DNA from: Cyanophora paradoxa CCMP329
Lineage: Eukaryota; Plantae; Glaucophyta
NCBI GenBank assembly: GCA_004431415.1
Contig: QPMI01000415.1
Coordinates: 241,823 to 305,822 of the forward strand
Direction: 5' to 3'
Length of the DNA: 64,000 nt
The notes beneath the pieces were generated by a model. The model was given only the letters and a program-made list of their open reading frames with translations. It was not told the origin of the DNA and made no database searches. The position numbers were made by a program, and so were the translations under genes. Of the stretch, positions 1-57,780 are shown in pieces (position 1 is the stretch's first letter; each line of letters begins with the position of its first letter).

Positions 1-1734
1 GCCGCCGCCGCGAGCTGTCCCTCCAGCCACGCCAGCTGTGCCGCCGCGTCCTGGGCCGAGGGGCGGGGGGCGGGGCCATCAGCCGGGAACTTCGGAGGGG
101 CGGATGAGGGGGCGAGGATAGGGCGGAAGCGGGCGTAGAGCGGGGGAAGAAAACGAGGGCGGGAAGAAAACGAGGGCGGGGCGCAGAGCGGGGCGCGGGG
201 GCCCGGCCCGGCCAGCGGCAGTTTTAAATCTAAACTCAGCAGGTCCACATCTAAATTCTAGCCTGGTCGACTCTTCATCCCCGGCCTGGGCGGCGGACCT
301 GGACGCAGGGGTCCTCGGCGAAGATGTCGGCCCCGCAGTAGGAGGGCACCATCGCGTTCGTGTCCAGGAAGATCAGCGCGATCTGGGGGGGGGTTTCAGA
401 GGGGGGTAGTGGAAGATTAGGGCGGACTGGGGGGGGGGTGAAGGTGAAGGGGCGGGGGGGGGGGGGGGGCGGTTTTAGATGTGGGGTATGCAGGAGGGTA
501 GTTGAAGATTGGGGCAGACTGGGGAGGAGGGGGAGGAGGGAGGATCCGCGGGGCGCGGGATACGTACCCCCACGAGTTCGCCGCTCGCCAGCTCCGCCGT
601 CAGCATCGAGCTGTAGTACCTGCGCGCCGCACCGTACCCTCCCTCAGTCCCGCTCTCGAGGCCTAGGCTTGGCTCGGGCTCGCTCACCGCGCGGGGAAGG
701 ACCAGCGGGGGCTCTGGTTTGAGTACGCGATTTGCGCGGCTGGCTTCCCCATATAGTCTGCGCGGTGATTTCGTTCGCTCGGCTCGGCTTTTGCTTCGTT
801 CGCCTCGTTCGGGCGCGCGCGCGCACCGTGGTTGCCGAGGGTGGGGTACCAGCGCACGCCCAGCTTCGTCTTGTCGTAGACCTGCTCGTACGACGCGAGC
901 CAGTCGCTGTCCTCGACGGAGCTCACCCCCTTCGGATAGAACTGCAGATCAAATTAGTTCGACCTCGGATCAAATCTAGATCAAATTCGAATTCCCGCAC
1001 GTTGTCGCCGACGCTGACGACGAAGCGGCACTTTCTCCTAGCGCAGATCTCTCCCATCGCTTTCGCGAGCTGCGGGCCGGGCCGGGGCGCGTGAGGCGCG
1101 CGCGCTCCCGCCGCGGGCGGGGCGGGCCGACGCACCGCGAGCTGGTGGTGCTGCCCTTTGCGGCCCCAGTCTGCGCCGGCCGAGGTGCGGCCATCGGAAG
1201 AGAGCCGCGGCCGGCGGCGCGCGCGAGCGGACCTCCGATGGCGGCGAACGTGTATCCCTCCTCCTCGAGCGCCAGCGTGCAGGGGCGCGCATCGCAGAAC
1301 TTCGCCGCCAGCGCGTCGAACTCGAAATCGGCGCTCTCCCACGGCCACCGCGGCCAGCCCGCCTGCAGCGCGCCTGCGGGGCCACATTGGAGGCCGCGAG
1401 TCGCGGGGGGAGGCGCGCGCGGCCGCTTGGTCTAGCCGGCCGCGTATCGCGCGAACGCACCCAGAACGAGGGAGACCGCAAGGCCCGCCAGGATGAAAAC
1501 GCACACGCCCCTGGCGCCAGGCCTAGAGCGTCCGTGCCCGTTGCCAGCGAGCGCCGTGTACAGTGGCGCCGGCGGCAACAGCGGTGAGCTTTCAGACGCG
1601 TGCGGCCTCGGCGCCCCGGGCGCGTCGCCATGCGCCGACCCGGCGGAATGAGCAGGCGGGGTCGCTGGGTCGGGGGGAGGGCTGCTGGGTGGCATTCGAA
1701 TGTGCGATTGCGCGCGACCGTCGGCCGCGGACAT
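1..1734 (-). CDS. Purple acid phosphatase / ACP5-type metallophosphoesterase, multi-exon, 3' end beyond the window edge
   Basis: Spliced exons read YTFAAIG|DWGRKGQHHQLA|LAKAMGEICARRKCRFVVSVGDN|FYPKGV...RWYPTLGNH|DYMGKPAAQIAYS...RWSFPAR|YYS...|IALIFLDTN...|AAAQLAWLEGQL. These contain the GDWG, GDNFY and GNHD metal-binding motifs. There is an N-terminal TM anchor (GVCVFILAGLAVSLVLGAFA). Confidence 0.92.
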
Positions 1735-2168
1735 GCACAGCTGCGGCTGTCGCTGCGGCGCCGGCTCTTACGCTCCCGATGTCGCAACGAGGGAATGGGC
1801 GCGGCAGCTGGCCTGAGGTGAATGATGCTGGTGTCGCTGATGCCGGCACCAGTGGAATCGCTGATGCCGGTGCCGGGGTCGGCGCACGCTCGTCTAGATC
1901 TAGACCTGTTGATGATCGACTCGGATCAGGATCATGATGGTGAACTCGCCCATGTGCGCCCCTTGAGAGCTGCAGTCTGCAGTCCGGCCGCGCGCCGGCG
2001 CGTGTCAGCATCGGCTTGTCGCGCGAGTCGAGCGTGCCCGCCCACCCCTCCGCAGACTCGCACTTCTACCCTTGCTCGTTTCCCTCCCCCCAATTTTTCG
2101 GCGCATCGGTCTCGGGTCCCCGTCAGCCGGATTTTTTCGGAGTGCTAGCTATACACGCCAGGCGCACG

Positions 2169-3854
2169 ATGCTCGCCTTCGCAGTAACAGCCGTAGCTTC
2201 CAGCTCGTCGCGGGCGCCCAGCAGCAGAAGCGCCGCGACATGCGTGCTCCGCAGCGAGTTCGCCGGCGCGTCGGCGAGCGGCGCCAGCAGCGCGAGCTTC
2301 TTCGCCGGCGAGGAAGCGCGCACCTTCCACGCCGCGCGGTCGTTCGTCGCCTCGAGCCCGGGCCTGCCGTCTTTCGAGGTCGTCTGCATGGGGCGGCGCG
2401 CGGCCAAGATTGCTGCGAGGAAGGGCAAGGCTGACCTCCTCAAGGGCAAGCTGTACTCGCGCGTCGGCAAGAAGATCATCACGGCGTGAGCTCCGCGCTC
2501 CGCGCCGCCCTCCGCGAGGCCCCGCGCTTACTCCGCACGACGTCGACAGCGTGAAGCAGGGCGGCCCGGATCCCGTCGCGAACTCGGCGCTCGCTTCCGT
2601 GCGTGCCGCGGCGTCGCCGCGCCCCCGGAGCTAAGCTAAGGCCGCGCCGCAGATCCTGAAGGAGGCCCGCAACGCCAGCGTCCCGACCGTGCGCCCGCCG
2701 CCGCCGCGTCCCCGCGCGCCCCGCCCGCGCTGAGCGGCCGCGCCCTACCCCCAGGACATCATCGACCGCAACATCAAGAAGGCCTCCGAGGCTAACCAGG
2801 CACTCCCGCTCCCGTACCCCCGGCCCCGCCGCTGTACCCGGCGCCTGACCGGAGGGGGTTACCGCAGGCGGCCTTCAATGAGATCACGTACGAGTTCATC
2901 GGCCACGGCGGCGTCGGAATCCTCGTCGAGGCCCTTACCGGCGCGCCCTGCGCCCCTCGCGCCGTACCCCCCCCTCGGCGTCCCGCTCACGTACCCCCTC
3001 CGTCTCGCAGACAACCCGAACCGCGCCAACTCGGAGGTCCGAAGGGTGGCGCAGAAGGCGGGCGGCAAGATCGCCAGGTGGGCCTCTCTTCCGCTTACCC
3101 CCCTCCCTTCCTCCCCCCTTCCGGGACTGGACCGACGCCGTACCCCCCCCCGTCACTCCCTGCGAACGCAGCCCCGGCAGCGTCTCGTTCAACTTCTCCC
3201 AGGTCCGTCCCCCTCGCCCCTCTCATACCCCTGTACCCCGGATCCCGACGCCCGGGGGTACGCAGAAAGGCGCGATCCGCCTCTCCGGCGTCTCCGTCTC
3301 GGAGGACGCCATGTTCGAGGCCGCTACCGAGGTGCCCCCCTCCCCAGCCCCCGTACCCCCTCTTTTTCACGTACCCCTGCCCCCCTCCAGGCTGGCGCGG
3401 ACGACGTGTTCATGGAGGGCGAGGAGGCGAGCTTGCCCCCCCTTCTCCCCCCCCTCCCCCGCCCCCTCCCCCCCCCTGAGCCCTCACCTGTACCCCAGGA
3501 GGGCTCCTTCACCGTGCTGACGGCCCCGGGCGACCTGTACGCCGTCAAGGAGGCGCTCGAGGCGGGGCTCGGCATCCAGATCAGCCCCGAGACCGTCAAC
3601 CTCGAGGTCGGCTCAGATCTGATCTGTTCTGATCCGATCTGATCTGATCTGAACTTCAGATGATCCCGAACGCGGTGGCGGAGGACCTCTCGGACGAGGA
3701 CGCGGACGCGAACGACGCGATGATCGAGGCCCTCGAGGAGCTCGACGACGTCAACCACGTACGTGCTCGCGTCGCGTACCCCCCCTCGAATTCCCGGATT
3801 CGAAATTCTGAATCGGAACCCGTGCAGGTCTTCCACAGTATGCCCCGCGAGTAG
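2169..3854 (+). CDS. yebC: YebC/PmpR/TACO1-family protein with plastid transit peptide; 12 exons
   Basis: Mature protein reads MGRRAAKIAARKGKADLLKGKLYSRVGKKII...GGPDPVANSAL...DIIDRNIKKA...EITYEFIGHGGVGILVEALT|DNPNRANSEVR...KAGGKIA|PGSVSFNF...IEALEELDDVNH|VFHS. The Ser/Ala-rich N-terminus begins MLAF. Confidence 0.93.
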
Positions 3855-4005
3855 TGGCGCCTCTTTCCCACAGCTAGGCCCTAGCTATAGTGTTTCTTCT
3901 CAGAGGCTTGTTCCGTTGAAGCATGGAATTCGAATGCCCTGCGCGAGTGCTTGCTCGTGATCACGCTATGTCGATCGATATCGTCGCAATAGGTCTAAAT
4001 GTACA

Positions 4006-4175
4006 TGTGTCACAGTGTAGCTAATCGCTCGCCAGGCATGAGTAATAGTCGATCTAGATCTGTTCCACGCGCACGTGGGGCCGGCGCGCGGCGCCGGCCG
4101 GCTCTGTGTGACAGCCAGCTGCAGAACGGCGTGTTTGCATTCACGACACGCATATGCACAAGCGTATACTTCCTT
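4006..4175. repeat. Dispersed repeat, copy A (homologous to 8754-8980)
   Basis: Shared blocks in the same order: tgtgtcacag, catgag, aatag, gtgtgacagcc, gaacggcgtg(t/c)ttg(c/t)attcacgaca. Contains an internal inverted pair tgtcaca/tgtgaca. Confidence 0.7.
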
Positions 4176-4416
4176 CGGACAGCCTCCGATTCAACATTGC
4201 TTGGGGGAATTCGAAGACGTCGACGAACTCTAAAAAGCAATAGAAAATATCTAATTTAATGACAGTATACGTATGTATACGTAAACGACGTGCCCTGATT
4301 ATGAGTGCGGTTCTACGCTAGCTTTCTGCGATGACAAATTAAGAAGGCTCCACGGGAAATCTCAATTCAATGATTACAATCAATATAACGATCAAGGACT
4401 GCCCCCTCACACTCGA

Positions 4417-7400
4417 TTACTCGTGTTCCTCGTCATTCTTCCGCGCGCGCTTTGGATTCCTCGGGACTTCGAATTCTGGTAGATCGGCGGCCGCGACACC
4501 AAGCTGAATGCTGGCGGCCGATTCTCCAGCGACCGGTGGCGACTCTGGAGCATCGGGGCCCGCTGCAGCTGGGGGGCTGGCCGGCGCCGACGGCGAAGAA
4601 GGCAGGGACTCGACGGCGGGCAGGTGGGCGGAGTGGAGGCGCGACTTCCAGTCGGGGGGCATGAGGCGGCCCAGCGCGGGGCCACGGCAGGCTCGGCCGA
4701 GGGACGGTAGGGCGCCTGAGCGTCGTCTGCGCGTCAGCAACGAATCGCGATCGCGAGCGGCGAGGCTGGCCATGGGGGCCGGGCGCGCACCCTCCGTGGC
4801 CGGGGGCACGTGCATCACCAGGGGCGCTGCACTCCCAGCCGCCGGCAGAGGCAGCGCCCTGCGCCTGCCCCTTAGAGAGCGAAGCACACAAAGCTCCGTG
4901 AGTTGAGCTGAAGACGCACCGTCCGCAGTTGGGGTACTCGGAAAGGAAGGGGTAGCGAGCACTTATACACCTAGCGCAGATGTACTCCCACTCATCGCTC
5001 ACTTTCTGCGCACCGTGGCACGCGCAAAGGCTTAGCTTATAACTAGGCGTACAGGTATACGTAGATCTAGAGTGCACCACGGCACAAAGCCTGAGGCCTA
5101 GCTGGCAATTTTGATGGCAATTGCAACGCACCCCATTCTTTGGCATGCCAATGCAGGGGAAGTGGAACCAGTCCCAGCAGGTCGGGCACTGCTCAAGTTG
5201 GGCGACAAAGGGAAGGATAGAGCAGACATGCGTGCACAGAACCGATCGCGAATTCGAACCTGGAGCATATGATTCCGGCCGTCGTCCGCCCCATCACAAG
5301 TGCAGAATTTCTCGTAGAAGTTGTGCCCATAACTGAGGATGATCATGAGGAGGATGAATATAACATAAATTGCAATTGAATTTGAAAACGATGACGACAA
5401 GACAAGAGCGCACATATTCTTGGAGTTTTCGGGATCCCGCTCTTCCACGAGCGTGCACCGCTCCTCGGCTTCATGATCATGATCGGGTGGAAAAAATGCG
5501 TCAGAGCGTGGAAGAAGCACAGATCTAGAGATCGCAAAGTGATGGCACCAGGCATTCTGCTGCTTCCGCAGTCACAGCGGAACTTCCCCTTGCACCCGAT
5601 GCTGACAACCTGGGCGGCAGGGCTCGAGTGCAGCAAGGGGCAGGGGCCGCGCAGACTTGGCTCACGTGATGGCCACGGTCTTCATGGCATTCCTCAGCGC
5701 ATCTGCAGCATACGCCCGCCGGCAGAGGAAACTGCGTGTGCGAATTTCGAAGTCATATTCCGAAGTTCAAAATCTCTGTTTGGCGCAGAATTCGAATATA
5801 TATCTAGACCTGGAAGGCCGGGCGGGAGTCGTGGATCACTCACCTCGCCCTTCTTCTCCTGGCATGTGAGGCAGATGTACACGACTTGGTCCACGTAGCC
5901 CCTCCCATACGAGCACTCGGACTTGCCGAGGTTTAGCGGGTCCTGCTCCCAAACCTAGATTCGAAACCAGACGATCACGATCAAATACGGATGGCCATGC
6001 ATGCATATATGGCGAGGGGGGACCTCTTTTTCCTCCTCCGAATCCTCGGGGTCCTCCTCCTCCTCTTCCTCCTCCTCGACATCTTCGCTGTCCTCATCCT
6101 CACCGGCGGCGTCCGCATTGCGGTCGTTAATGTTGAGCTCGGCTTGCTCCCGGGAGTCCATCACGATTTTCTCGATCCGGCCGGCAGTGATTTCAGCATC
6201 CCGCCCGTCTCGCGATCGGTGCTGCATGGTTACGACGGCAGTCGTGTTCCCAAGACGCATGCTGATCCCGGGGGCCACTTTCTGCAGTAGCTTCCGCTGA
6301 TTTCCCAGAAAGCACGCAATTAATTTCTTCTGGCTGTCAAGACCGAAATGCAACTCCTCTGCGGAATAATGGCAGTCAGGATGGAAATACCAAGGATCGT
6401 GTACGTGTGCATTCGTACCCAGACAATATTTTGAAATCAAGGACGTTTCTGAAGCGAAAAAAAGCAGATGCGTGGCTAATTTAATCGCTATCCCAACTGC
6501 GGATGCAAAGCTCCTGATCAGCGTGAACCAGCGTGAACTCCTGTAATCAACAAAGCGCATGGAATGAAGTCGCACTCTCGTTCACCCATCTGTCCCCTGC
6601 AAAGCGCAGAAGTTAATTTAAAAACGATGTAAATTGCTGAATAGAAACGCACCCCCTTCCAGCTGAAACTCATCAAACCAGCACGCGACGCCACGCGCCT
6701 CCAGAGCCGCTTTGATAGCCGAAACGATATCGTTGTCGGCGTGCGAGTAGCTGATAAAGACACGGACTGCAGGAGGCGAGCTCTGTCCTGTGTGCCAGCC
6801 CTTGTACAGGAACGGATTTGTGTCCGGGCGTTCCCCCAGCACCGCACGGCGCGGCACGGGCTCAGCCGAGTCGCTCGCTGTCTGCTTTTTTAGCGCAGCT
6901 GCCAAGCTTCTGAGCCACCCGTCATAGCCGGGGCCGCGACTCCCGAAGAAGGGCCGCACTGACTGCGCCCAAAGTAAGCCCTAGCCTTGTGGATGTTGGA
7001 CAAGGCTGCCTATAAATATTTTTGCAGACTTGAAAGGATCTGATGCGCATGCTCAGCCCAGGGTTCGTGCGCTCCAGGTAGTGATCGCTCATGCCGAAGT
7101 AATCGATTGTTAAGGGCACAACGATGCATCCGTCGTCGATCGCTGGGCGCGGAGGAGAAAATCAGTCCGACGGTCTCGCGAGCTCGAGAGAAGCCGTGGC
7201 CGTGCACGTGAGCGAACCTTCATATAAAGCCGCAATCAATGCCTGGTTTTCTGCCGACTGCGATATCGATGCCTGGGATGCGATGAAGAGAAAGGAGTGG
7301 GCGTCGCAGCGGGCCGCCCTATGTCCAGCACTTTTGGATCCCACGGCTGATCCGCACAGCTGCAGCTGTAAGGTCGGCGCCGGCGTAGAGCAATCCGCGC

Positions 7401-7777
7401 CGGCGCGTTCCGGGACATCGTTGCAGCTGCGTCATGATCATGAGCAGCCTGGCAGCCGGGGCGCGGGCTCTATATCTGGTGTGGCCGGGGCCCGGGGCGG
7501 CCGGGGGACCGGCCACTCTACGTATGCGCCCCGCGCGGCGGCATCCGCCGGGCCGGGGCTGCGGCCCGGCAGCCGGCCGGTTGCGGCCGGCGGCCGCGGG
7601 GGCCGGGCTGGCGGGGGCCGGCCGCGGGCCGGCGGGGGCCCGGCGGCCGGCCGTATATACGCGCGCGCACCAGAGCACGAGCTCGAGTTCGCGGCGCAGG
7701 TGAAGATCATCCAGCACGTGAGAGAGCCGCACAGCATCCTCAGCAGTCGCCAGGACGTGCACGCGGCGCCCGAACAT
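4417..7777 (-). CDS. Tandem TIR domain - acidic tract - UBR box - PHD finger protein (UBR7-like E3 ligase fusion); 5' end unresolved
   Basis: TIR2 reads RVFISYSHADNDIVSAIKAALEARGVACWFDEFQLEG|GDRWVNE|IGIAIKLATHLLFFASETSLISKYCL|EELHFG. Its last exon runs in frame into the E/D tract. UBR box: CSYGRGYVDQVVYICLTC...GVCCRCAEECH...KGKFRCDCG. PHD: NFYEKFCTC...MLQ|CPTCWDWFHFPC...YICARC. A UBR7-like PPDWKSRL precedes the stop at 4417. A degenerate TIR1 lies at about 7766-6900 and needs one extra G near 7318. Confidence 0.82.
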
Positions 7778-8753
7778 CGCCGGCTGCGAAGAACGACATC
7801 ATCATGATCATTCGAATTCGTATATATATGTGTGTGTATGCACGCGTGATCATGTGCATGAGTGGCATGCATATGGCGCTGCAGTGTATTCGTACACGTA
7901 CGTGTGCATGTGCATGTACATGTGCTGATGAGGTTGACGATGGTGAGGATGGCGTGGACATCGCGAACATCGGCGAGGACAGGGCGATCCGTCGTGATGA
8001 TATCGATCGCTTTAGCTATGCCGATAGTATGCTGCCCGCTAGCTACTAGGCCAAGGCTAGTTAGTAGCGCTGCCGGGTGATCGTGACGCCGTGACGCGCT
8101 GCTGCGCTGGGACTCGGGAAGCTCCAGCTGGTCGCCAGGCTCTGCCGAGTGCACCGGTACCGTAGACTCTCAAGATCCGCTGAGCCTCGGAGTTGCAAGT
8201 TGCTGGGCGATGCTGGCTCCAGACCAAGTGCGATGGCAACTCGCCGAGTCGGCGAGATTGCGGAATCGAGTTCACCGTTGTTAACGTTGCTAAGTTGGCT
8301 TTTGGCAGCTGGCAGTTACGGGGGGTACGGTATACGGAGCTAAACTTTACTGCTTTCATTGCGCTTCAATTCGCGATCGCGATCGATCACGCGGATCCGG
8401 ATTTCGAATTCGGATCGAATATTCGAATTGGATTCGGTCGGCGCCCCCGCGGCCGCTTGTGCGCCGGCGCCGCCTCCTCGATCAGCCTCCTCAGCAGGCC
8501 CTCAGCCCGGGCCTCGCTGAGTCAGGGCCGGCGCCTAGCCATACTGTAGCCGGCCTGGATCCGGACGTCGACTCGATTCCAGAGCTACGCGTATGTGCAC
8601 CGCGGCCACCGGGCGCTGCGGCATGCGCAATGCAAGCCTTTTGAAGCGTGATGATCATGATGATCGGATCATCGATATCGATCGCGATCGGAGCAGTACA
8701 TTAATTTAAATCGGAGCTCGAGCACCGAGAGCCTCGAACTGAAGGCCCTCCCG

Positions 8754-8980
8754 TGTGTCACAGAGTCGCAGGGCCCCCGGCCCCGCGCGGGGCCTTGCCC
8801 CCGCGACCGGGCCAGGGGCCCTTGATCATGAGCTCAGGGCCTTCGCTTCGAGCTCCAATAGCTAGGCCTGTGCCCCGCGCGGGACCCGCGGCCCCGTAAC
8901 TATAGCTAGCCTAGTAGGGCCTCGTGTGACAGCCGGAACGGCGTGCTTGTATTCACGACAGTGTAACCAGCATTTTCTCC
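8754..8980. repeat. Dispersed repeat, copy B (homologous to 4006-4175)
   Basis: Same block order as copy A in direct orientation, expanded by GC-rich micro-duplications. Confidence 0.7.
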
Positions 8981-9273
8981 ACACATCTTGTAATATATAA
9001 CTAATACTACATTTTTGAAGAAAATATTGTGACCATGTCATGAAGGCGTTGAGGAAAAACGTTCACGGTTGCGAGCTATTATGCGTTAACGTTTACGGTT
9101 TTATTTACAAACCGCACCGGTCTGCAGTACTACGGTACCGCTTCGCGGGTTTGAAGGCATACCAAGTCGTACTCTATAGCTAATCAAATATACGGCAAGA
9201 AATAAGGGCGCGCACTAACCTAATAATACTTGCAAATTGTTCTAATAAAGATTACGTTCATCGGCTCATCGGC

Positions 9274-12200
9274 TCAGATTCGGATGGTGTCGAGCTGCGG
9301 ATCTCCGCGAGCGGAGGCGTCGACCTCGATCTCCTCGGGGAACACCTGCGATTCGTGGGTTCGAATCCGAATTCGAACACGTTTCTGTTCTATTTTCGGA
9401 ACCGATCTTCGCACCTTGCAGTGGGGCACGGGGACGGGGACGGGGGCGGCAGCCGCGGAGGCGGCGGCGGCCTCCAGATCCACATCCACTGGGCGGGCGG
9501 GGCCGGCGGTGACGGCCTCCGCGGCGCGGACGCGGCGGCGCCAGACGGCGAGCGCGGCGACAACCGCCGCGGCCGCAACTGATCATCGTGAATGGAAGTC
9601 AGAATTCGAAAGTAAAAGCGAAAGTAATTGAAGGGCGCACCGGCGACGGCGGCGCCCGCGGCGCCGGCGACGGCTGCGACGAGGCCAGAGGAGGACGAGG
9701 CGGAGGCGGCGGCGGGCTGGGCCGCGCCCGCGCCCGCGGCGGCGGCGCGGAGGGCGAGCTCGAGGTCCGTCTGACCGGAGCCGCCCGACCTGAACGAAGA
9801 AGAAGCAGTGCGGGGCGAGCAGGTGCCGGCGAGGTCGGGGAGGCCGTCGCGGTCGAGGTCGCCCACGACCGTCCAGCCCCACGTCGCCGGCGCCTGCGGC
9901 TGCCGCGGCAAGAATTCAGAAATCAGCGTTCCTTCGATTTCTATTCCATGATCTCTATTGATTCCTTCTCCTAGGCCTTTAAAATAAAATGAGAAGCTTC
10001 CTCCTGCTCGATTCGTACCTCGGCGGGGGAGCCGGTCGCGGGTGCAGGCGCCAGCGCGACCCCGCTGGCGACGGCGCCGGCGGCGGTGCCGAGGCCGCTC
10101 CCGACCCTGGCGCCCGCGCCCGAGCCCGCGGCGCCGGCGAGGCGGCGGCGGAAGACGAGCCGGGAGGAGGGGCGGCACTCCTGCGGGAGCACTCCGACCT
10201 GCAAAGGAAATCAGACGGAAATCGGACGGGAATTCGACCGATATCGATCCCACCTTTGCCTTGGCGGCGGCGGCGCCGCAGAGGTCCCGCGCGACCACGT
10301 CGAGGTGGATGTGGAGGGCGTCGGCGTCGGCGGTGGAGGCCGCCCCCGCCTCCGCCTCCGACGCGATCTTGGCCAGCAGCGCCCTGCAGGAGGTGAGAGG
10401 GCGCAGGCGGAGGCGGACCGGGCGGGCCGCCCCCCCCCCCCCCCCCCCCCCCCCTCGCTATGAAACGGTATGAAAACAGTACAATGACGTGGGGTTTACG
10501 ATATGAAAGATCTTATGTAATAATTAAAGGCAGGCAGGGGGTGCGAGGGGCGAGCCGGGGCGCACCGGTCGGCGAAGAGAGCGACGACGGAGTCAGTCGC
10601 GTAGACGCTGCGCGCGCGCTCAGACGATCAGAGCTAACGAGGTCTGGCCGTAGGCCAATCCAATCAAGTTATCAATAATCTATAAATTTCTAGAACGCTG
10701 AACCCAAGAAATCAAGAAGTGCGCCGGGCGCACCGCTCGGCGAGCCCGTCGCAGTCGTCGTCCTGGCGCCCGTCGAAGAGCGACGCCGGGTCCTGCGCGC
10801 GCGCCTCTTAGAAATGCAGCTACTAGCTCTCATAGGAAGAGCAGCTACTAATGCAGGGCACAATTAGGACCCGGCGTCGCTCTTCGTCACCCGCACCCGC
10901 TTCCCACCTCAGAGACGCTCCTGATCACTTAAACATAATCTCTCAAGATTCTTTCTTTCTTTCTTTCTTTCAAGGTAGAGGGCGGCGGTGGAGCTAATGC
11001 AGCTAATGAATTCCACCAGAAATGCTCTAGAAGCTGTTCTTTAGAAGCGCGAAAGTTAACGGCTCGCCCTCAATATTCGTGGATTGCTCTGACCTCGGGG
11101 GACCAGCGGTAGAGGACGGCGGCGGCGCCCTCGGCGATCGGGATCGGTTCGCCGGGGGCCGGCGGCGCGCCGTTGACGATCTTGACCGACAGCTGCGAGA
11201 GCTTGATGTTCCCTGCGCGCGCGGCCGCAGGTTCGAGTCCGCAGAGTCAGTTTCGCAATTGCAAGCCGAATTCGGGGAGCGGAGGATGTATATCTAGAAA
11301 CATGTACAGACCGAAATGGGCTCTGCCCGGGCGCCGGCGGAGCGCGGCCGACACGAACGTCAGCTCTGGCTGCGGGCCGAGCGTCAGTTTCGAAGCCAGT
11401 TTCCTATATATTGGTGTGTGGTTTTAATTCGCTAGAGCCACGAGTTAGACAGAGAGATGCCGTTTGTTAACAGCTGGCGCTGCGCATGCTCAATCGTTTC
11501 ATCTTCTGAGGGAGGCCCCTTGAGGATACACGTCGAGGGCGGACCATGAAGGGGAACATGCCCGAGTGGACGCCGGCGGCGAAGAAGCGGACGCCGACTC
11601 CCTCGGGGAGCCCCTTGGCGTAGTCCACGGCTGTCCCCGCCCGCGGGGCGAGCCGCTGCAGAAGGAAGGCGTAAGGAGGAGGAGGCGTAAGGAAAGGCGT
11701 GAGGGTTTGGAAAGCTTATGAGTAGGAAAGCTATAGCGATGTGGGTCGGAGGGCACCTCGAACTTAAGGCCCTGGCGGAGTCGGACCTGCGCGTTCGAAC
11801 CATCTCAACATACAAGATCTAAAATACCACGTTCGGCTTTACAGCTTCTTTGATTTACAGCTTCTGCCGCGCGGACCTTGGGCTCGCCCGTGGCGCCCGT
11901 CCGCGAGAGGGTCGTGAAGGCGATCCCCGTCGCCGCGTCCACGCGCACCGGCCAGCCTGGGGCAGAAGAAGAAGTGTTATAATTGGGAGAAGAACCGAAT
12001 CGAGGAGAAGAGGTCTAGGGCGCACATTCGAATGTGGCGCCGCCCTCGCCGAACTGCGGGTAGGCTGCGCGACAGGGTGCGAAATTGTCAAGCTTCGAGC
12101 TCCAAGCAAGCTTCTATTCGAGCTTATGCATGAGGGCATGCGTACCGTCGAGGAGGCGGCGGTCGTCGCGGGGGCAGGACTCGACCGCGTCCCACGAGGG

Positions 12201-15200
12201 GCGGCGCGGGGCCGCCGGCGCCCGGCACGCCGCCGGGCACCCCTGGCAGACGCGCGCGCGCGCGCATACATGTCAGCGTCGAAATCGTATGAGCGATCAT
12301 GAGCGATCGGGATCGCGGCTGACCTCGGTCGGCTTCTCGAGGCAGGTCGCGGGGCACGTCGGGAGCGACGCCTGCGAGATCGCGACGGTTGTCAGCTCGG
12401 GTCGGGGTCGAATTCGAAGGGGAGGGGGGAGGGGGAAGGGGGCACCGGCTCGAGGGTGCGGCGGAAGTCTGGGGCGGGCGGGGGGGGGAGGGGGGGGGAC
12501 GCAGCGGAGGGACGGGGTCAGATCAGATCAGATCAGAGAGCTCGAGGTCAGATGGAAGCTCAAGGGCAGCGCACGGCAGATCGAGGTCTGCAGCAGGAAA
12601 ACGCAAGTTCAGCGCCGGATAGAGCGAACAACGTGTGTAGAGAAATCGAGCTTAAGCTTCAGCACCGTCAGTTTGCACTTGGCGCAGCCCGTCAGCATGA
12701 AGTTCTCCGAGGCCCCGCCGAGCCTCGCGGCCACGAGGTTCATCGAGATGCGGTTCGGCATCCCGCCGCTGCCGGGGTTGATGCCGCGCCGCCCGGTGGC
12801 CATGCCCGAGGCGCTGTCGCGGGGCGAGCGGATCGCCGCCTGCAGGTACGACTGCGCACGAAAAGACGAGTCGGGAAGAGCGCCGATTACAAGTAACAAG
12901 TTACAGGTATTCATGTACATGAGTCGATCAACGGCATTAAAAGCGCGGAGCGCGGCAGATCGTTGTGAACGCGGCAGACGTGTTGGCGCGCACCTATATA
13001 TCATAGAACATTGTGCTATTATAGAATGTTACTTGAATGTTATTGTGCTATTATAGAATGTTACTTATAGAATAGAATCTTATATGATTAATACTTTACT
13101 ATAGAGCGCACCACGGGCTCGGGGTCCGGCTCCGCGGAGCCCTTCACGCTCGCCTTGAGCCGGCGGTACCCCGAGGAGCCGCCGCCCGGGGCGGCCAGCT
13201 CGAGCTCGAGCGCTGCCGGGGCGGGGCGGCACCGGCGTCACAACGAATCGGAAATTGGGAAATTGGGGTCCCGGGTCGGAATTGTGGCCATGGGCACCTG
13301 GGGCGTCCCCGCCGCTCAAGCTCAAGGGGCCGCGGCGCTCCAGAACGCTCCAGTCGCCCGGGAGCTGTCGCGAGAGCACGCTCGGGGGTTGAGAGGAAGG
13401 ACGCTTCTAAGCTTTCTAAATCTTAAGCTTAAGAAGCTTAAGAAGCTTAAGCTTCATTTTAAGCTTCCTTATTACGAAGGGGCCGAACCACGACGGACTG
13501 GCGCTCCACGACCGTCTGCGGCGGGTCCGGAAAAACCTGCGCATGCGCATCCGGCCCATGATCAGACTCCCGGGGCCGAATTCAAAGCAGCGGCGAAGTC
13601 AAGCTGGACGACACTTGCAGTTGCCGCGGAGCACGCACGGTGGCGCCAGCGGCGGCGGCGGCCTTGAAGTTGACGCAGTACTCGTGGAACGGCAGGGAGA
13701 CCTCGGCGCCCGCTGCGGCCCGTTCGAAATTCGCGAATTCCGCGGCCGGGGCCGGCCGGGCGGGCGCCGGGGGCGGACCGAAGGCGGGGTCGCGGCGCTT
13801 GACGAGCGTGTTCCACGCGCCCGTGCTCGACTGCGCGTGCGCTTGCCCGTCAGCCATCGGCCGCAGGGTGCTGTGTACGGTTTAATTGGGGTCGCGGCCG
13901 CGCGCGCCTTCAGGCTCGAGATGCTTCCGGAGCCGGCGACGACCACGCCCTGCGCATCAACGTCAACGAATGCGAAAATCTTAATATAACTTGATAAAGA
14001 GAGATCTCAATCTCATAATGAGATCGCATGTTGTGCGCGCATCAACGTTCACATGGTAAGCGTGCCATCAATTTATCGTTCGTCCTCTTTGAATTCGCAT
14101 CAGGATCACATTCGATGTTCAAGTCTCTCCCCCGGCCCCGGCCCCGCCCCCGCCCCACCGCCGGCGCCCCCGCCCCGCCCGCGAGGAGCGCGCGCGCGCA
14201 CCGCGGCGTGGCACCAGACCTCGTCGTCGAACGTGCGGTCCTCGGCGAGCTTCTCCGCCGGCAGGCGCTGCCGCGACCGTCAACCAAGCCAAGGCTCGTT
14301 GAGAGATGGAAGTACTAGTGTCGACTGGGCAGTGCGCACCGGGTAGAAGGAGGAGGTCGAGTCGGAGCCGGAGGGCGCCGGGCGTCCGCGGCAGACCGGC
14401 TTCTGGCCCTGCTCACGCGAAAGCAGACGTCGACGCGGATGCCGTCATGATCAGGTTCGAGCGAGAGGCGTCGCGAAACGATGGAGGGAAGAGGGAAAGA
14501 CCGGCAGAAGGATGCAGGACTCGATGATGCGGCCCGCGGCGTTCTGGAATAAACGTTAAAGTTAACGCTAGCGACGTCGACGCAGGCGTGATCATGAGCG
14601 CAGCGCACCCGCGTGCGCCTCATGGATATGCCCGGGTTATGGTCCTGCGCGCGCGCGTGCAGGAATTCTCAGAGAAACTCTCGATCGATCCCGAAACATC
14701 GAATTCGGATCGGCTTCGGCGTCGCACCACGTCGACCTTGCCGACGATGGCGCGCCAGCCGCCCTCGGGGCTCCACGTGTGCGCCGAGGACGGGCTCGCC
14801 GGCGGCGCGGGGCGGCAGACCTCCACGCTCGCCCCGCTCGCGTCCTGCACGCGCCGCTTCAATTTCCGTTCCAATTTCCAGACGCCGCAGGGCGGACCGC
14901 GGCGGACTCGCAGAGGGAGGCGAAGTGGAGGTGCCGGGGCTTGGCCGCCAGCTGCTCCTTCGCCGTCCCCGCCCGCGCGAACTCCAGCATCGCCGCGCCC
15001 TCCTCCGTACCCGCCACGGGCTGCGGCAAAGCTAAGTCGAGGCGAGCAATCTAATTTTAGCGTCGGTGTGGTTTGGTTTCGGGTACCCGGCAGGCGCCGC
15101 CCTCCTGGAGGCAGGGGGCGGAGCGGGCGTCGACGGGCGCCGCGCTCTTGTCCCACAGCGTCACGTCTTCCACCGGCATCTGGAATGCAGTTGAATATCA

Positions 15201-18200
15201 AGAAATGGTATCTTGGAATTTGAAATAGTAATATTAATCACCAGGAACGGCTTGTCCTTGTCGCGTGGGGGCAGTGGGACGTAGGCACGCTCGCCCTCGG
15301 CCTGCGCCGAAAGACTCGGACTCGCTGCGCCGAAAGACTGCGCCGAAAGCGCTCGCTCGCTCGCTCACGATGGGGAACGGGTTTCGGTCGTCGCGGGGCG
15401 GGAGCTGAACAAAGACAGGCTCCAGCCCGGCCTGAAATGAAACGAAGAGGTGGACTCGCGTGAGCAGAGCGGAGCGTTTGATTGCACGTTAGGTTCAAGG
15501 GACCGCGCGCACGATTTCGACGCGAAGAGCGCGGGAGAGTCCGTCCTGAGACCCGTTATAATTAATTACATTATGGTTTCTCGAATTCGAAGATAGTCAG
15601 GTTGAGGACGGACCACGCGGACGTAGCCGCCGGAGGCGGCGCTCAGCCCGTCGAAGTTGTCGCCCTGCGCATACGAACCCCGGCCCGGCCCTCTAGATCC
15701 GAAGAGCGGAGGCGGGCGGGCGCGGCACGGCACCGGCATGACCGAGTCGCGCTCGACGACGGGGACGTGGGCGGAGCCCTCGAGCCCGTCCTGCGAGAGA
15801 GCGTGCGTCAAGCGCGCTTCGGACTCTGTTCAACAGGCATAGGCACGGGCGCACGATTGTGACGCGAACGTAGGGCGTGGGCGGGACCGTCTCCTGCGCA
15901 AAAAGACTTTAACGCTGCGGCTTGGCGACGCGCGGCTGACTGACCATCGAGACGCCGTTGTCGGAGGCGCCGCCGAGCAGCACAGCGAAGCTGGTGCGGG
16001 CGGACCCGGCGAACGCGTCCGCCGGCTTGCCCGTGATCCGCTCCACGGCGGCGTTGTCGAGAACGAGGCGGCAGGCTCCGTCCCCGGGCGCGTACGAGAG
16101 CATGCGGCAGCAGAGGGGGATCTTCCTGTCGCAGGGGTTCCCCTGGTGCCTGAGGCAGCTGCCGTCGCCGGGGGCAAAGCAGGCGCCGTCGCCGGGCGCC
16201 GGGCATCCCATCTCGCCCGGCGCGAAGTACGTCAGGCGGCACGCGCCGTCGCCGGGGGCGAAGCTGACGCATTGGCCGGCCCCGTCGCTCTGCTTTTTGA
16301 AGCAGGCGCCGTCTCCTGGGGCCACGCACGACCCGTCGCCCGGGGCGAAGGTCGGCGCGCCGTTCTCGTCCACGGGCGTCAAGCTGAAAACGAAGCGTAA
16401 GCTTTAAATTTAGCCATCCAAAAATTTAGATGGGCCCGACTCGCCTGTAGAGGGCGCGACCGGGGCGCTTGTGGGTGATCGGGTCGTCCCCGTTCCGGTA
16501 CTCCACGCGGTTCACCTCCTCGTCGTCGTCCCTGGTCTGACGGGGTCCAATTTGAATTACATCCCGTTTCCGTTACAAATTATGAGCTACAAATATGTAA
16601 AAGCGCACAATAATTATGGAGACCGACTTGCGCTGGTTCGCCTCGCTCGGGATCGTCGGGAGGTAGCACGAGCCCGCCCCCGCCTGCGCGAAATTCAGAT
16701 TCGGAGGGCGCCGCGGAGCGAGCTCGGGTCGATATAATATATTTAAGCAACAAGCAACAAAGCTAACTCAAACGCACCACGGTGATTTTCTGGAGCTCGC
16801 CGTACTGCGTGGCGGAGACGCCGAGGCGGGGCGGGACGGCGATCACGTAGCCCGCGGGGTGCTGCGCCCAAAAGGAAGACCGGTAACGTTAACGTTATCG
16901 TCAGAAACGAGGTCTGTCCAAGGCAGGTTACAGCGGAATTTCAGCGGAATTTCACGCACGCTCCGGTCGAGCCCGCTGCCGCCCTGCACCTGCTTCGCCG
17001 CACGGCGGTGCCTGCGGGAAGCCTCGTTGAGCCGCTGCGGTCGCCCTGTGATCAGCGGGCCGCTCGATTGGATACGAATCCGAAATAGATCGTTAGCTGA
17101 TGGGTGTTGGTTGTTGGTCGTTTTGGTGTATTTAATGTTGGTCTAATCGTTGACCGTTATAATTAGCCAGTCAACGGCGCGCACCTTCTTGTACTCGATT
17201 GCTCTCTCGGTGTTGCGGATTCCGCGGCCCGGCCGGAGCTGGAGCGCGCCGCCGCCGCCCACGGTCTCGCCCTTGTAGCGCTCCTGGATGCTGCCCATGG
17301 CGTCCTGCAGGGACGGCGTTAGCTGTAGCCGCGAGACGAAGTCCGCCTCTAATATAGCAATCTACATATATTAAATATTGCAATATCTGCCGCACCTGGC
17401 TGGTCATGCGGGTGACGAGGGACTTTCCGGGGCCCTGCAACGACGTTAACAATATACATCAATGTCGCGGACAACCAGGAGAGCTGTAATGGCGGCGATT
17501 GTTCTGACCGACTGGGCGAAGCACTTCTCGACGTAGGCGCCCGTCTCGGCGTCCAGCGTCCCGTGGCACACGCTCGGCGTCTTCGGGCTCCCCTCGATCG
17601 AGATCTTCTCGGTCTGGCGCGCGCGCGCGCGGGCGGGTGCAGGGTCGACGTCAGAATAATCGGGATTTTTGCGACACGCATTTATATGGAGGGCCGGCGC
17701 GGCCGACTCGCCTGGAGGCCGTCGCCGTCGTCGTCACTATCGCAGCAAGGTGCCGCCTCCGCGGCCGCCAGCGAGTCCACCAGCGGCTGCCGGGTTCGAA
17801 GATCGAAAGAGGTCAGATCGAACGGTGCAGGTATATATGATGAAGGTTGACGGGGACCGGAGGCCTAGAAGAAAGCGGCCCGCGCGCTGGGGCGGACCTT
17901 GTAGAACGAGGCGACGAGGCGCCCGCTGGGCTCGAGCGGGTGGCAGACGACCGAGTCCTGCGCGTGCACGGCGGCGGTGCCCGACTAAGCGATCCATGCC
18001 GCGAGCGGGCGAGCGGGCGGGCGTGCCTCGCTGGGCGGAGAGGTCTGGGGCGCCTCGCGCCGAGTCCGCACGTGCCCCCCCGCGAACGAGTCCTCGTAGA
18101 GCGGGCTGGACGTCCCGCCCCCGCGCGGCATGTACGACAACGTGCCGCCCGCAGCGCCGGCGGCCTTGCCTAGCAGGCCCTTGCCCTTGTAGCAGCGCGC

Positions 18201-51758: not shown

Positions 51759-52699
51759 TCTGACACTTGAGGGCCGGTTGGGGTCGGGGGGGAGACCGTA
51801 GGGGGCCGAGGGGCAGCGTCTTGCGAGGTCCCGAGCGGGGGGGTCAGCTGAAGCGAGGGGGGGGAGGGGGAGTTGGCTGCTTGCAGCGTCGTAAGTGGTT
51901 TGTACACTCCGGGTGCAAAGAGGGACGTGATTGTGGGTTGCCCCGTGGGTATCGGCATCGTTCGCGCTTTTTTGGTCATGCGCCTGGGAGTCTTGCGGCC
52001 GGTTGCCTTTCTTTTCGCCGTGGGTACGGGCGGGGCGGGTGTAGAGGCGGGAGGGGGAGGGGTCGCGGGGCGCGGGCATTTGGGTGCCGGGGCGGAGGGG
52101 GTATCGGCTGTCCGTTTACGTGAGGCAGGCGACGGGCGTGTTCGTTTTGGGGAGGGGCCAGGGGGGGCCCCGGAGCGGGGCGTTTGGAAGGTTGGGTAGT
52201 GTTCGTAGGACCCGCGGGCGAAGCGGGCAGGATGCCAGTGTCGGAGTTCTCGTGTGACTGTCGTGCTGGGGGTACCGCAGGTGAGGAGGTAGGGCAGGAG
52301 GTGATCTCAGGGCGGGCGGGGCATTTTCCCCGTCTGGCGTCGGAGTGGGCCTGGAGGGCAGATGCAGAGGCGAACCGAGTGCCGCAGGTGCAGGAGAAGT
52401 CAGACGTCCCGGCGGCGGGTCCTGCATCGGGCAGCTGGGGGGAGGGGGGGCCTGGGGGGAGGGGGCGACGGGGAGTCGTGCAATTGCTTGGCGGAAGTTT
52501 TCCAAGAGAATCCATGGTTGGCCTTCCGAGCCCAATTCGCAGCAGAAGTCGGTGATGGAGATGGTATCATGGAGGGAGGGGGCGGGGGGAGGGCGGGGGG
52601 GAGGGGGGGGACTGGGCGGCTGCACTAGAGGCGAGCGGGAGGGTTTGGAGTCTGCATGTTTGCGGTACCGACGTTTGGTTCTGTCATTGATGCCGTGTC

Positions 52700-53810
52700 G
52701 GAGCTCCCAGGCGTGGTTGCGGGCGCAGCGGTCTCTCCAGATCGCACGGAGGTGTTGGTCGAGGAGCAGCGCTAGGTCTTTTTGGATTGACGATGAGGTG
52801 GTCTTGTTGATGCCCAGAGCTGTGCAGAGGGCAGGCAGTCCTGCCGGGGTACCGAGGCGCAGGAGAGCGAGGGCGGGGAAGGGAAGCATGTCGGCCAGGG
52901 CCGGGCTGAGTTTTTCCCATAGTGTATCGGCGAGGCCGGGGGGGCGGAAGAGAGCCGGATTTGCGGTGGGGAGAGAAGGGCGGAATGGAGGGGAGAGGCG
53001 GGGTCAGGAGAAACGAGGCGGAGGAAGGGGAAGAGTTGAAAGATGGTATCGTCGTGTCCTAGTGGTTTGGGCGAGTGGCGGAGAACCCGGGTACGGAGGA
53101 AGGTCACGAGTGCGTCCTGGAAAGCTTGGAGAAGGAGGCGAGCGGCGGGGCAAGTAAATATGTGGACGAAGTCTTCGGGGGGGTGGGTTGTGGGGTCGGG
53201 CGGTCTGGGGTCTGCGGCCACCGGTGGGGAAAAGGGCGAGGGGAGCCCGGGGGGTGCATGTGGCAGGGGCGGGGAGGGGGGGGGTGGGGAAGCAGCATCT
53301 TCGGGATGGGGCAGGGGTGGGAGGGAGGTGACAGAAGGGGCAGTGGGCGGTGCCGTCGGGGAAGAGAGGGCCGTAGAGGTCGGGGTCGTGGAGGAGGCGG
53401 ATGGTGAGGGAGGGAAGGCTTCCAAGCATGCATTGGAATCTGACTTTGCGGAGGTGGTCGCCTGTGGGGGTGCGGCAGTCCGGTGGCTTGTCGGACACTA
53501 GGGAGAGGGCTGGAGCGAGGGTAACATGGGGGTTGCTGAGGATGGCCCCCGCGTTGCGAAGTTGGCGCCAGTCAAGGTATTGGGAGAGGGAGGCTTCGGC
53601 TAGGAAGTGAGGGCGGGGGTCCCCCTCGACGCGGTACGCATGGAGTCTGCCTCGGTAGGGCTCGGCCCCGGGGACTGGGCCGTGGGATAGTGGGGGCGGG
53701 AGGCCAACACGGATGAGGAAGCATTTGAAACTGTGGGGAATGAAAAGAAGGGCGGAGAGGGGGGCGTCGGGGGCTGTTTTAGCAAGCTTGTCAACGGCGT
53801 CATTGTGGCG
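52700..53810 (-). other. RNase H C-terminal helix, then CCHC zinc finger and LINE C-terminal domain
   Basis: HNDAVDKLAK (53807-53778) is in one open frame with VEGDPR...RKVRFQCMLGSLPS...CPFC. After frameshifts come EDFVHIFTCP and AIWRDRCARNHAWE. Confidence 0.8.
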
Positions 53811-54309
53811 GTTGTCAGGGGTGTAGGCTGGGTTCGGGATACGATTCTTAGCCGGGGTGCGGGCCGCCTCCTTCTGTGCGGCTGTTTTGGATGTTTTGGC
53901 GGACCGTGGTTGCGGCAGGGTGGCTTCACGGTGAGCGGCTTCAGTTAGGATGGACGCCGCTTCGAGTGGGGTAACGTGGGACGGCCGGAAGAGACGGCGC
54001 GCTGTGGCGGAGGCTTCGTTGCGAGCCAGGTCGGCGAGCTGAGAGGCGAGTTCTTGGGCGTAGCGGGCGCCGGGAGGGAGGGGGTGGCGGGCCCTTCGGG
54101 GCGGGGCGGGGGAGACTCAAGCACAGTTGGGGAGCGCGGGAGGGCTGGATGGTTGGGAGAGGATGGTGGGGAGTCGAGGGTAGGGAGGGTGCCGCCGGTG
54201 GAGACTGGGGGCGGCGCGGCGGATGGGTACGCCCGGGGAAGGTCGGCGGGGCCGGAGGGCCGGGAGGGTTGGGCTGCAGCATAGGGGGTCAAGGGTGACG
54301 GACCCGTAG

Positions 54310-54995
54310 CAGAGGCTGAGGGCAATATATTCACGGTATCTGCGGAGCGCTGCAGCGTCGGCCTGAATGTAGGCTGGGGGGCGGGGCAGGTCCGACGGGG
54401 TAAGTGCTGAGGAGCGACTGAGTAGGTCAGCTGTGAGGAGGAGGAGTGGACCGCAGGCCGTGCTGTTTGGGGGCTGGAGAACGGAGAGGGATGTCTCCGG
54501 GCGTAGATAGGTCCATCTGCAGAAGGGAGTGGGGGGGAGGGGAGATCCAGAGTCGCGCTGACTCCAAGTGGCCGCCAAGTCTTGTGCAAAGGAGACAAGG
54601 TGATCAGGGACGTCGAGGGAGCCATTGTAGAAGTAGAATGAGCGCGTCTGTGGAAATAGAGCAAGTAGGTGCCAGTGTCCCGGAGGTCTGCTGGAGGAAG
54701 GGGTCAGCGAGGGGGCTGGTGGGGTCTGTTGAATTGGGCAATAGGTGAGGATGGGGACGAGAACAAGGCGGGCATCGAGGAGTCGTCCGTGGGGGATGTA
54801 TCGGTGTAGGGGGAGGAGGGCAGAACCCCGAGAGTCGAAGTGGGAGGCTGCGCTAGCAGGGTAGGAGCTGGACGATAGGAAGTGAGCAGGGTGGGGCGAG
54901 GCCAGGGCGGCTTCACGGGAAGAGAGCAGGTCAAAAAAGGCTTCCACGAGGGGGAGGCTGAGGGGGGCATTCGGACGGAGGTGTATAAGGTCGCC
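54310..54995 (-). other. Ulp1/C48-like protease domain 2, intact-looking His-Asn-Cys triad
   Basis: DLIHLRP..LVEAFFDLL..HFLSSS..LVLVPI..GHWHLLAL (His 54677-54675)..YFYNGSL..LQPPNSTACG (Cys 54455-54453)PLLL..YREYIALSL. Confidence 0.82.
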
Positions 54996-55509
54996 TCGTC
55001 GAATGAGTGAGTAACAGTGAGGGTCGGCTCGGGGGGCGGGTGGGAGGGGGGGCTTCGACGCGAGGGTTGCTCCGCGCAATAATCATTGTCTGCGAAGCGG
55101 AAGGCATTCCCCAGCCAGCTTTCCTCCGCCAGCGTCAGCGGGCGAGGGAGGGGAATTCAGTCGGGTGGACGGGGGTTCGGCCTGGGGAGGCATGCGCAGC
55201 TGGGTGGGCCGCGGGCGCCGGAGGGCGTGGGATTGAGGAGTGGGCGTGGGAGGGGGTGGAGGGATGTGGGAGGGGGGAGGGGAGTTGGGGGACCGGGGGG
55301 GTGTAAGGGGCGAGGGGGAAGGGGGGGGACGGAAGGGAGGGGGGGTGGGGTCTCGTTTGCGTCGGACCCGGCGGCGGGCTTTTGCTGCCGTGTGCTGGGA
55401 GGGGCGGGAGCTGGTGCGTGGGGTCGTGCGCTGCCGTTTTGTTGTGAAAGCCGGGCCGTTGGCCTGGATTGTCCCCAGGAGGACCTCAGGGTCCCGGAGG
55501 AGGAGAGCG

Positions 55510-56140
55510 GCCGCCCAGCGTTCCCGGTAGATGGGGGCGTGGAAGGGAATGGGGCGGCCCCGTCCTTTGCCGTACAGGTGGACTTCCTCGCCGCGGCCAA
55601 TGAACTCAGCGGCGGTCATGACGAAGAGAGCGTCTTCACCCGTGTGGACGTGTTTCCAAGCTTGCGTGGGGAAGGTGCTGGTGTCGTATTTCCAGGCCGA
55701 GCGCGGGGAGGGGTCGCCGGGGCGGAGGGTCGCCGTCCACCATTTGAGGACCCAGTCTTTAAGAAGGACCGTGACGTCGGAGGCGGGTTTGCGGGTGACG
55801 TCCAGGATGCGGATTTCGCGGAGGCGGGCTGAGATGATTGCTAGTCGCCAGGGTCGGGACCCAGAGGGTGGTAGGGGAAGGAGAATATAGTCGTACTCCG
55901 TTGGGGAGAAGGGGTGCGGGACGTAGGATCGGTCCGTTAGCGGCCGGCCTGCGCGGGTCTTGAGCGAGAGGGTGGAGGGGGCTGTGCCCATGAGGATTGA
56001 GGTTGCGTGGGAGGACGAAAGAAAGAGGCACTTGGGGGTGGTGGGGGCGTGCAGCCGGAAGGAGACTTGCCGGTTCTGAAGAAGTCTGAAGAAAGCGTCA
56101 ATGGGTTCTGCAGGTATGGGTTGTTCGAGGAGAAGGGTGT
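55510..56140 (-). other. Ulp1/C48-like protease domain 1, catalytically degenerate
   Basis: PIDAFFRLLQNR...CLFLSSS...DYILLPL..GSRPWRLAII...IRILDVT...FPTQ...TGEDALFVMTAAEFI...YRERWAAAL. His is replaced by Pro and Cys by Asp. Confidence 0.7.
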
Positions 56141-57363: not shown

Positions 57364-57780
57364 GTGAGAGGGGACCCATTGGAGCGTGATTTGGAAGTTT
57401 GGGTCTTGAGCGATACGAATGGCGTATTGCGTGCGAGCGTTGAGGAGAAGGGCCCCGTCTTCTCGGCGGAGCAGGGTGCGGAAATTGATAGGGTGGGAGA
57501 AAGAGGAGGGGTCTCGGAAGGCGAAGGCTGTCAGGGCCCGGATAGTGTTTTGGCTGTCCGTGATAATTTTCCCACCCGTGGGCCCGAAGTACGTGAATGC
57601 TGCGGAGATCGCGCCTGCTAGCTCTCCCAGGTTCACGTTGTGTTGGACACCGGGGAGGCGGTGGGCGAACTCGATGTGGTTAGGTAGGTCGGGATTATTT
57701 TCGAGGGGTGCAAGGCCGGCGTAGGTGGTTCGGACTGATGCGGAGCCCTGTTTTTGTGTGCTGGCGTCCGTGTATATTAC
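57364..57780 (-). other. RNase H, N-terminal part
   Basis: VIYTDAS (Asp 57768-57766), NLGELAG (Glu), IITDSQ (Asp), ITLQWVPSH (His 57366-57364). Confidence 0.9.

Follow-up and report, generated by a model that had tools for sequence, protein, structure and literature searches.

Introduction

Integrated decoys are defined in NLRs. To our knowledge, no pathogen and no downstream TIR pathway is known in glaucophytes, and little is understood of the means by which unicellular algae detect infection. UBR7 is a histone-binding protein, and the PHD of human UBR7, an atypical Cys4-His2-Cys2 finger (His163/His166), ubiquitinates histone H2B (PMC6438984). In Nicotiana, UBR7 binds directly to the TIR domain of the resistance protein N and lowers the level of N, while the p50 protein of TMV binds and displaces UBR7 (PMC6642208). 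In plants, immune triggers commonly induce TIR genes (PMC9153377). TIRs of algae can have enzymatic activity (10.64898/2026.04.20.719644).

We analysed a 64,000-nt stretch of the genome of the glaucophyte Cyanophora paradoxa, referred to below as the window, in which a preliminary description made from the sequence had proposed a fusion of two TIR domains with UBR7. The coordinates and features given there are present in the sequence. The TIR-UBR7 fusion is real, was found in a single species and is apparently undescribed.

Results

Gene model and reading frame of the fusion

A model of the fusion gene was built by three-frame reading of the minus strand, after which the splice sites were assigned. 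The model runs on the minus strand from the ATG at 7777 to the stop at 4417-4419, and includes 16 exons with 682 codons and no internal stop; the 15 introns (56-244 nt) are all of the GT-AG type. The joined 682-codon sequence was assembled only for checking of frame and intactness, and similarity searches with the spliced model were performed exon by exon. The order of domains is a degenerate TIR (TIR1), a second TIR of the TIR_2 type (TIR2), then an acidic tract followed by a UBR box and a PHD finger of UBR7 type, as listed below.

7671-7783, minus strand: first modelled exon, with ATG at 7777; possible N-terminal part of TIR1, of unsupported identity (not above shuffles against the TIR profile)
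7218-7426, minus strand: TIR1 exon with betaC-alphaC and Ala at the catalytic position; 5' boundary uncertain (beats 500 of 500 shuffles)
7030-7142, minus strand: TIR1 betaD-alphaD exon, similar to the corresponding stretch of TIR2 (E 5e-5 by BLASTP against the TIR2 exon)
6653-6962, minus strand: end of TIR1, linker, and betaA-alphaA-betaB with BB loop of TIR2 (Pfam TIR_2, E 6e-9)
6576-6596, minus strand: 21-nt micro-exon of TIR2, start of alphaB (gapless register to the TIR profile)
6419-6496, minus strand: TIR2 exon with alphaB-betaC-alphaC, ending in SKYCL (columns 50-71 of the TIR profile; score above all 500 shuffles)
6024-6358, minus strand: fusion exon with the catalytic Glu codon (6356-6354), the remainder of TIR2, Met 6260, Met 6161 and the acidic tract
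5414-5954, minus strand: UBR7-type UBR box in four exons (5954-5844, 5731-5666, 5609-5549 and 5468-5414), zinc ligands kept (colinear to reference UBR7s)
4920-5332, minus strand: PHD finger, Cys4-His-Cys3, in three exons (5332-5260, 5188-5132 and 5005-4920; Pfam PHD, E 5e-4 on one exon)
4417-4858, minus strand: C-terminal tail, in which a weakly preserved UBR7 motif (W-x-x-x-W-R/K) is followed by Pro/Ala-rich sequence and a basic, NLS-like end (introns taken from the published model)

The fusion exon (6358-6024) leads from the catalytic helix of TIR2 into the acidic tract in one frame, without a stop and without a competing donor. It is linked to the first UBR exon by a phase-0 intron (6023-5955), and the same intron is used in the published model of this locus, tig00020562_g11166.t1. 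The proposal of a fused reading frame was borne out by this open exon and its phase-0 splice, and from the continuous frame we infer that TIR and UBR7 are joined in one gene; the earlier wording of one gene and not two neighbours was, however, too firm for a reading made from DNA and not from RNA. The acceptor of the joining intron was the weakest of the 14 scored (4.3 vs 6.1-10.7), and upon retention of this intron the protein would end at an in-frame stop. The stretch of the model from TIR2 to PHD is well constrained; less certainty attaches to its first exons, to its start codon and to both introns of the tail.

Splicing of an upstream exon (7970-7902, minus strand) in frame to the first modelled exon is possible. 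The longest intron (7427-7670, 244 nt) carries a very GC-rich, self-complementary stretch at 7455-7542, possibly a small inserted element. A TCATGATCAT-like motif was found just before several acceptors (5335, 5467, 7428 and 7798), possibly representing a branch-point-associated signal in C. paradoxa.

Catalytic residues of TIR2 and degeneration of TIR1

TIR2 was detected above the Pfam TIR_2 cut-off on one exon. On a TIR profile built from 47 bacterial TIRs, the TIR2 exons were aligned without gaps across three introns and the 21-nt micro-exon. The SKYCLEEL motif of TIR2 is split by the intron 6418-6359, and its second Glu (codon 6356-6354) falls on profile column 74, which is Glu in 36 of the 47 bacterial TIRs and corresponds to E208 of AbTir. 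Four residues before this Glu, at column 70, TIR2 carries Tyr at the position of AbTir W204, where cyclising TIRs have an aromatic residue (10.1101/2022.05.07.491051). The FISYS motif of betaA and the Asp and Gly of the BB loop are also kept. The nearest solved structures were bacterial NADase TIRs including AbTir, with weak E-values, and the exon 6653-6962 matched TIR_2 clusters of the Atlas, which we take only as a lead. The intact catalytic Glu claimed for TIR2 in the preliminary description was confirmed by its position on the Glu column in this gapless register, and NADase activity of TIR2 is plausible from these residues.

TIR1 lacks the catalytic Glu, the residue at column 74 being Ala whether placed by the profile register or by a backward count from betaD. 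The C-terminal half of TIR1 was recognized from its betaC-alphaC exon, which beat all 500 shuffles, and from the next exon, which resembles TIR2. The exon 7783-7671, a possible part of the N-terminal half, was not above shuffles and had no measurable similarity to the TIR profile. TIR1 is a degenerate repeat, or pseudo-TIR. The proposed TIR-TIR tandem therefore stands for TIR2 and the C-terminal half of TIR1, but with Ala at the catalytic position of TIR1 and with its N-terminal half unsupported. Identity with ricin A was rejected, as the matches were weak (E 0.2 or worse) and rested largely on translated intron sequence.

The UBR7-derived part

The UBR and PHD exons matched UBR7 references from metagenomes exon by exon and in correct order. 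This colinear match takes in the UBR box, the linker motif of UBR7 and then the PHD. All 19 scored Cys/His zinc ligands of the UBR box and PHD are kept. The PHD of the fusion is of the Cys4-His-Cys3 type, the second His of the human finger being Cys; this Cys was also found in 2 of the 7 reference UBR7s. The C-terminal third of UBR7 (a zinc motif and a helical region, about 120 aa after W-x-x-x-W-R) is absent from the fusion gene. The start of the W-x-x-x-W-R motif gave a weak match only (E 5.8), no profile match was obtained across the tail, and a low-complexity, Pro/Ala-rich tail with a basic end stands in place of the C-terminal region. The label of E3 ligase is doubtful, because the second catalytic His of the PHD is Cys and the C-terminal domain is missing, and a role of the fused UBR-PHD as ubiquitin ligase is not established. 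By Pfam, none of the pieces contained an NB-ARC, NACHT or repeat domain; the 682 codons are accounted for by TIR, UBR, PHD and tail.

Between Met 6161 and the first UBR motif lie 59 codons. Reference UBR7s start at about this place, and Met 6161 is probably the old UBR7 start. Its location suggests that the TIR module was placed ahead of a duplicated UBR7.

Published annotation of the locus

A protein search with the PHD region gave a single match, EukProt tig00020562_g11166.t1, which is the published model of the same locus. This model of 266 aa starts at Met 6260, retains the acidic tract together with the first UBR exon and passes from there directly to the last PHD exon. Almost the entire TIR region is missing from it, as are five UBR/PHD exons. 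Since five real UBR/PHD exons are skipped, the published model is unreliable, and there is no sign that it derives from transcripts. The preliminary description had named transcripts starting near Met 6161 and excluding the TIR exons as the case against a fusion; the published model does start nearby, at Met 6260, but skips real exons. Its zf-UBR match was weak (E 0.09), its AlphaFold structure was uninformative (pLDDT 42), and an Atlas search with it gave only low ZZ-type leads.

Physical continuity and expression of the locus

Two contigs of the DNA run X1 covered the locus (3900-7551 and 7634-9300), both with no differences, and a contig of run X2 covered 5769-7332 with one inserted base, located in the joining intron. 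As the contigs of X1 (3900-7551) and X2 span the join, the TIR-UBR7 join is real DNA, and misassembly of the fusion was ruled out.

Next to no words of the gene were found in 17 runs labelled with the same species, which we guess to be RNA. In run X4, no contig was found on the fusion gene, though both flanks (3900-4051 and 8935-9300) and a UBR7-like paralog were present. Contigs drop rare molecules, and low or induced expression is compatible with these blanks. A 6315-nt contig of X4 from 8935 suggests a long expressed upstream neighbour, for which no Pfam match was obtained in three open frames of 9390-16400.

A separate UBR7-like paralog

Run X1 also carries DNA of a paralog, with 2 differences in 42 nt and 7 in 59 nt from the fusion gene (5% and 12%, in the two best-matching windows). 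In X4, a contig aligned to the PHD exon over 41 nt and showed 2 differences there. The paralog matches in X1 and X4 map to 5151-5192 and 5861-5919 of the fusion gene. The contig ends were available as 30 letters and were read by eye; the loose end of the X4 contig continues into exon-like UBR7 sequence from the same splice position, indicating that X4 contains spliced RNA of a separate UBR7-like paralog. By eye, the next intron of the paralog seems to start with GC. No protein for the paralog was found in the protein searches, perhaps because its annotation is wrong or its length exceeds 465 aa. A separate UBR7 in the genome had been named as a check on the decoy model; a UBR7-like gene is indeed present in X1 DNA and spliced in X4, as known from short segments only.

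Search for related fusions

Searches with single exons or open frames returned only the published model of the locus or nothing, a result limited by query length and with little bearing on full-length fusions. An in-frame intron in the query lowered the power of a HMMER search of cluster representatives; besides the published model, this search gave a single repetitive protein (E 8e-4), which was judged a chance match. No TIR was found in any of 21 UBR7-like metagenome loci, most of them short. Ten contigs labelled human gut were left out of the analysis, and no contig that was read looked human. In the literature on UBR7 and TIR, Cyanophora and TIR, and zf-UBR and NLR, no description of a TIR-UBR7 fusion was found. 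Within these limited sequence and literature searches, the earlier statement that no such architecture is known holds.

Base composition, selection and flanking elements

The GC content over 4900-7300 is 54% as compared with 65-69% in the flanks, in agreement with the lower GC content noted before. Every part of the fusion gene has a GC3 within 0.60-0.76, as against about 0.9 in the neighbouring TACO1/YebC exon, and the GC3-richest long frames reach 0.8-0.97. TpG and CpA are raised in the fusion gene. A drift toward AT is seen in both halves and would be expected of a weakly expressed locus, and the drop in GC3 fits relaxed or silent sequence.

The UBR-PHD frame, its 24 splice bases and the 19 ligands are all intact. 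In a simulation of neutral evolution, the probability that UBR-PHD stays intact was 0.06 at 3% divergence, 0.013 at 5% and less than 0.001 at 8%; the corresponding values for TIR2 were 0.24, 0.09 and 0.02. As 19 of 19 zinc ligands are kept despite divergence, selection is suggested; this evidence is supportive and not decisive, as the simulation does not fix how much divergence belongs to the fused branch or its timing relative to the fusion.

On both sides of the fusion gene, elements with the same layout and orientation were detected.

4008-4148, no strand assigned: left flanking element, a short piece bounded by inverted repeats, plus a 25-nt direct repeat
8756-8960, no strand assigned: right flanking element of the same layout and orientation, with the second copy of the 25-nt repeat

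Each element is bounded by a 7-nt inverted motif, followed by the 25-nt repeat. Only two copies of this direct repeat exist in the 64 kb, at 4124 and 8936, bracketing the fusion gene, and the X4 contigs end at or within the flanking elements. No target-site duplication was found around the fusion gene, and the interiors of the two elements are dissimilar. The flanking repeats may be a relic of transposon-mediated insertion.

Elsewhere in the window, a TACO1/YebC-family gene (about 2170-3854, plus strand; Pfam) is convergent with the fusion gene, and its 3' flank is covered by an X4 contig. Frames at about 900-2010 (minus strand) resemble by eye a purple acid phosphatase-like gene with membrane anchor, one Pfam scan being blank. 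The region of about 52000-64000 has a strong GC skew and long minus-strand frames resembling by eye a non-LTR retrotransposon, including endonuclease-like (61511-62293 and 62169-63794) and protease-like (54117-55991) frames.

Discussion

We tentatively propose, with somewhat less than even confidence, that the fusion gene is a lineage-specific chimera acting as an integrated-decoy sensor, with low-level or induced expression. A tandem-TIR module would have been fused in frame to a UBR7 duplicate, of which the gene has the 5' two-thirds, and the original UBR7 start is probably read through. The paralog would keep the normal UBR7 job, and because this spliced paralog exists, the fused copy would be freed from its housekeeping role. 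The UBR box-PHD copy could then be the bait for attackers of UBR7, such as a viral protein; alternatively, it might dock on its own TIR and hold it off, as plant UBR7 does in trans with N. When the bait is bound or modified, TIR2 would be released or clustered, leading to NAD+ cleavage or to a cyclic ADPR signal, and the Glu-less TIR1 could be a scaffold or a brake. Loss of the UBR7 C-terminal domain fits a bait role. The decoy model of the preliminary description gains from the separate spliced UBR7-like gene and from the precedent of N, UBR7 and p50, whereas the whole chain of events between bait binding and TIR activation is our inference and no transcript of the fusion was found. The blank in transcripts and the low GC3 count against the decoy reading, which also has no comparative support because no second TIR-UBR7 was found. 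Further points against it are the absence of NB-ARC and LRR from the fusion, given that integrated decoys are defined in NLRs, and the lack of a known glaucophyte pathogen or downstream TIR pathway.

It is possible, though unlikely in our view, that the locus is a silent or decaying chimera, in which pieces of TIR and UBR7 were united by transposon capture or illegitimate recombination, with residues inherited from selected parents and no function. The absence of fusion-gene RNA, the low GC3 throughout with raised TpG/CpA, the eroded TIR1, the lost C-terminal third of UBR7 and the 25-nt repeats bracketing the gene as a unique pair in 64 kb would all be in line with such an origin, but the 16 exons are free of stops, frameshifts and broken splice sites, and a few percent of neutral drift would usually leave a lesion, as judged from the simulation. 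The lack of a target-site duplication and the internal difference between the flanking elements also argue against it, as does the AT shift common to both halves, which suggests that they have had a period of joint evolution in which nothing broke. Even as a silent gene, the fusion would clearly illustrate TIR shuffling onto host genes in the C. paradoxa genome.

The weak acceptor of the joining intron, retention of which reaches the in-frame stop, raises the alternative that the locus gives two products, a TIR-TIR-acidic protein made by retention of the intron 6023-5955 and a UBR7-like protein whose start is Met 6260 or Met 6161 and whose promoter lies within the TIR exons. The former Met is the start of the published model, and reference UBR7s start about at the latter, yet neither intergenic space nor UTR exists between TIR2 and the acidic tract, no stop precedes the joining intron, the published model is the one that skips five real UBR/PHD exons, and no UBR7-only transcript of the fusion locus was seen in X4; we thus consider two products rather improbable. 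We regard as very improbable that the fusion is a chromatin-tethered NAD+-consuming enzyme or ligase, in which histones would be read by UBR-PHD, with TIR2 depleting NAD+ locally or producing ADPR as part of ordinary nuclear signalling. UBR7 does bind histones and the human PHD ubiquitinates H2B (PMC6438984), and the acidic tract, the basic NLS-like end and the intact zinc fingers would suit a nuclear protein of this type. A routine regulator should, however, be transcribed in culture, and no transcripts were seen; the PHD is without the second His of the catalytic human finger (though some non-vertebrate UBR7s also have Cys), and the gene was found in one species only. The link between NAD+ signalling and chromatin ubiquitination, also raised in the preliminary description, is therefore a poor fit to the absence of transcripts.

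Fusion of two proteins that interact in plant antiviral immunity predicts a recurrence of the TIR-UBR7 link, or of pathogen targeting of UBR7, outside land plants. The fusion also offers a compact construct to ask whether a decoy domain gates a TIR enzyme without an NLR scaffold. We think it unlikely, on present evidence, that the full proposal is correct, namely that a UBR7 bait was wired to an NAD-cleaving TIR in one NLR-free glaucophyte protein, independently of the tobacco N-UBR7 relation. If true, UBR7 would be a recurrent antiviral guardee across Archaeplastida, and the fusion a minimal decoy-TIR sensor in a unicellular alga. Because the published C. paradoxa annotation truncates such genes, TIR surveys based on proteomes will miss them.

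Comparison with known systems

The fusion shares with UBR7 of human, rice (OsUBR7) and Nicotiana (NbUBR7) the acidic N-terminal stretch, the UBR box, the Y-x-H-N-F linker and the PHD, in the same order and with ligands kept. It differs from UBR7 in the two TIRs in front, in the Cys4-His-Cys3 instead of Cys4-His2-Cys2 PHD and in the low-complexity tail replacing the C-terminal zinc/helical region, and C. paradoxa carries a second, spliced UBR7-like gene. With bacterial TIR_2 NADases (AbTir, BtTir, PdTIR and TIR-SAVED) and SARM1, the fusion shares the FISYS start, the W-x-D-E-F entry of the BB loop and the catalytic Glu in gapless register; unlike these, it is intron-rich, has Tyr for the alphaC Trp, has no coiled coil or SAM oligomeriser, and carries a tandem pseudo-TIR in front.

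In the module of N, NbUBR7 and TMV p50 (PMC6642208), TIR and UBR7 are likewise linked, UBR7 binding there both the TIR and the viral protein. The partners of that module are, however, separate proteins, with N carrying NB-ARC and LRR, whereas TIR and UBR7 are in one frame here. Since the TIR of the fusion is of the TIR_2 type and not of the plant-TNL type, the TIR-UBR7 link would be convergent with the N module. NLRs with integrated domains (RRS1-WRKY and Pik-1-HMA) resemble the fusion in that a duplicated host domain is fused to an immune module while a separate copy remains; they differ in that the fusion is without NB-ARC or LRR, with no partner NLR seen and no effector known. The fusion is neither a full UBR7 nor an NLR; in its proposed mode of action it would resemble an NLR that carries an integrated domain.
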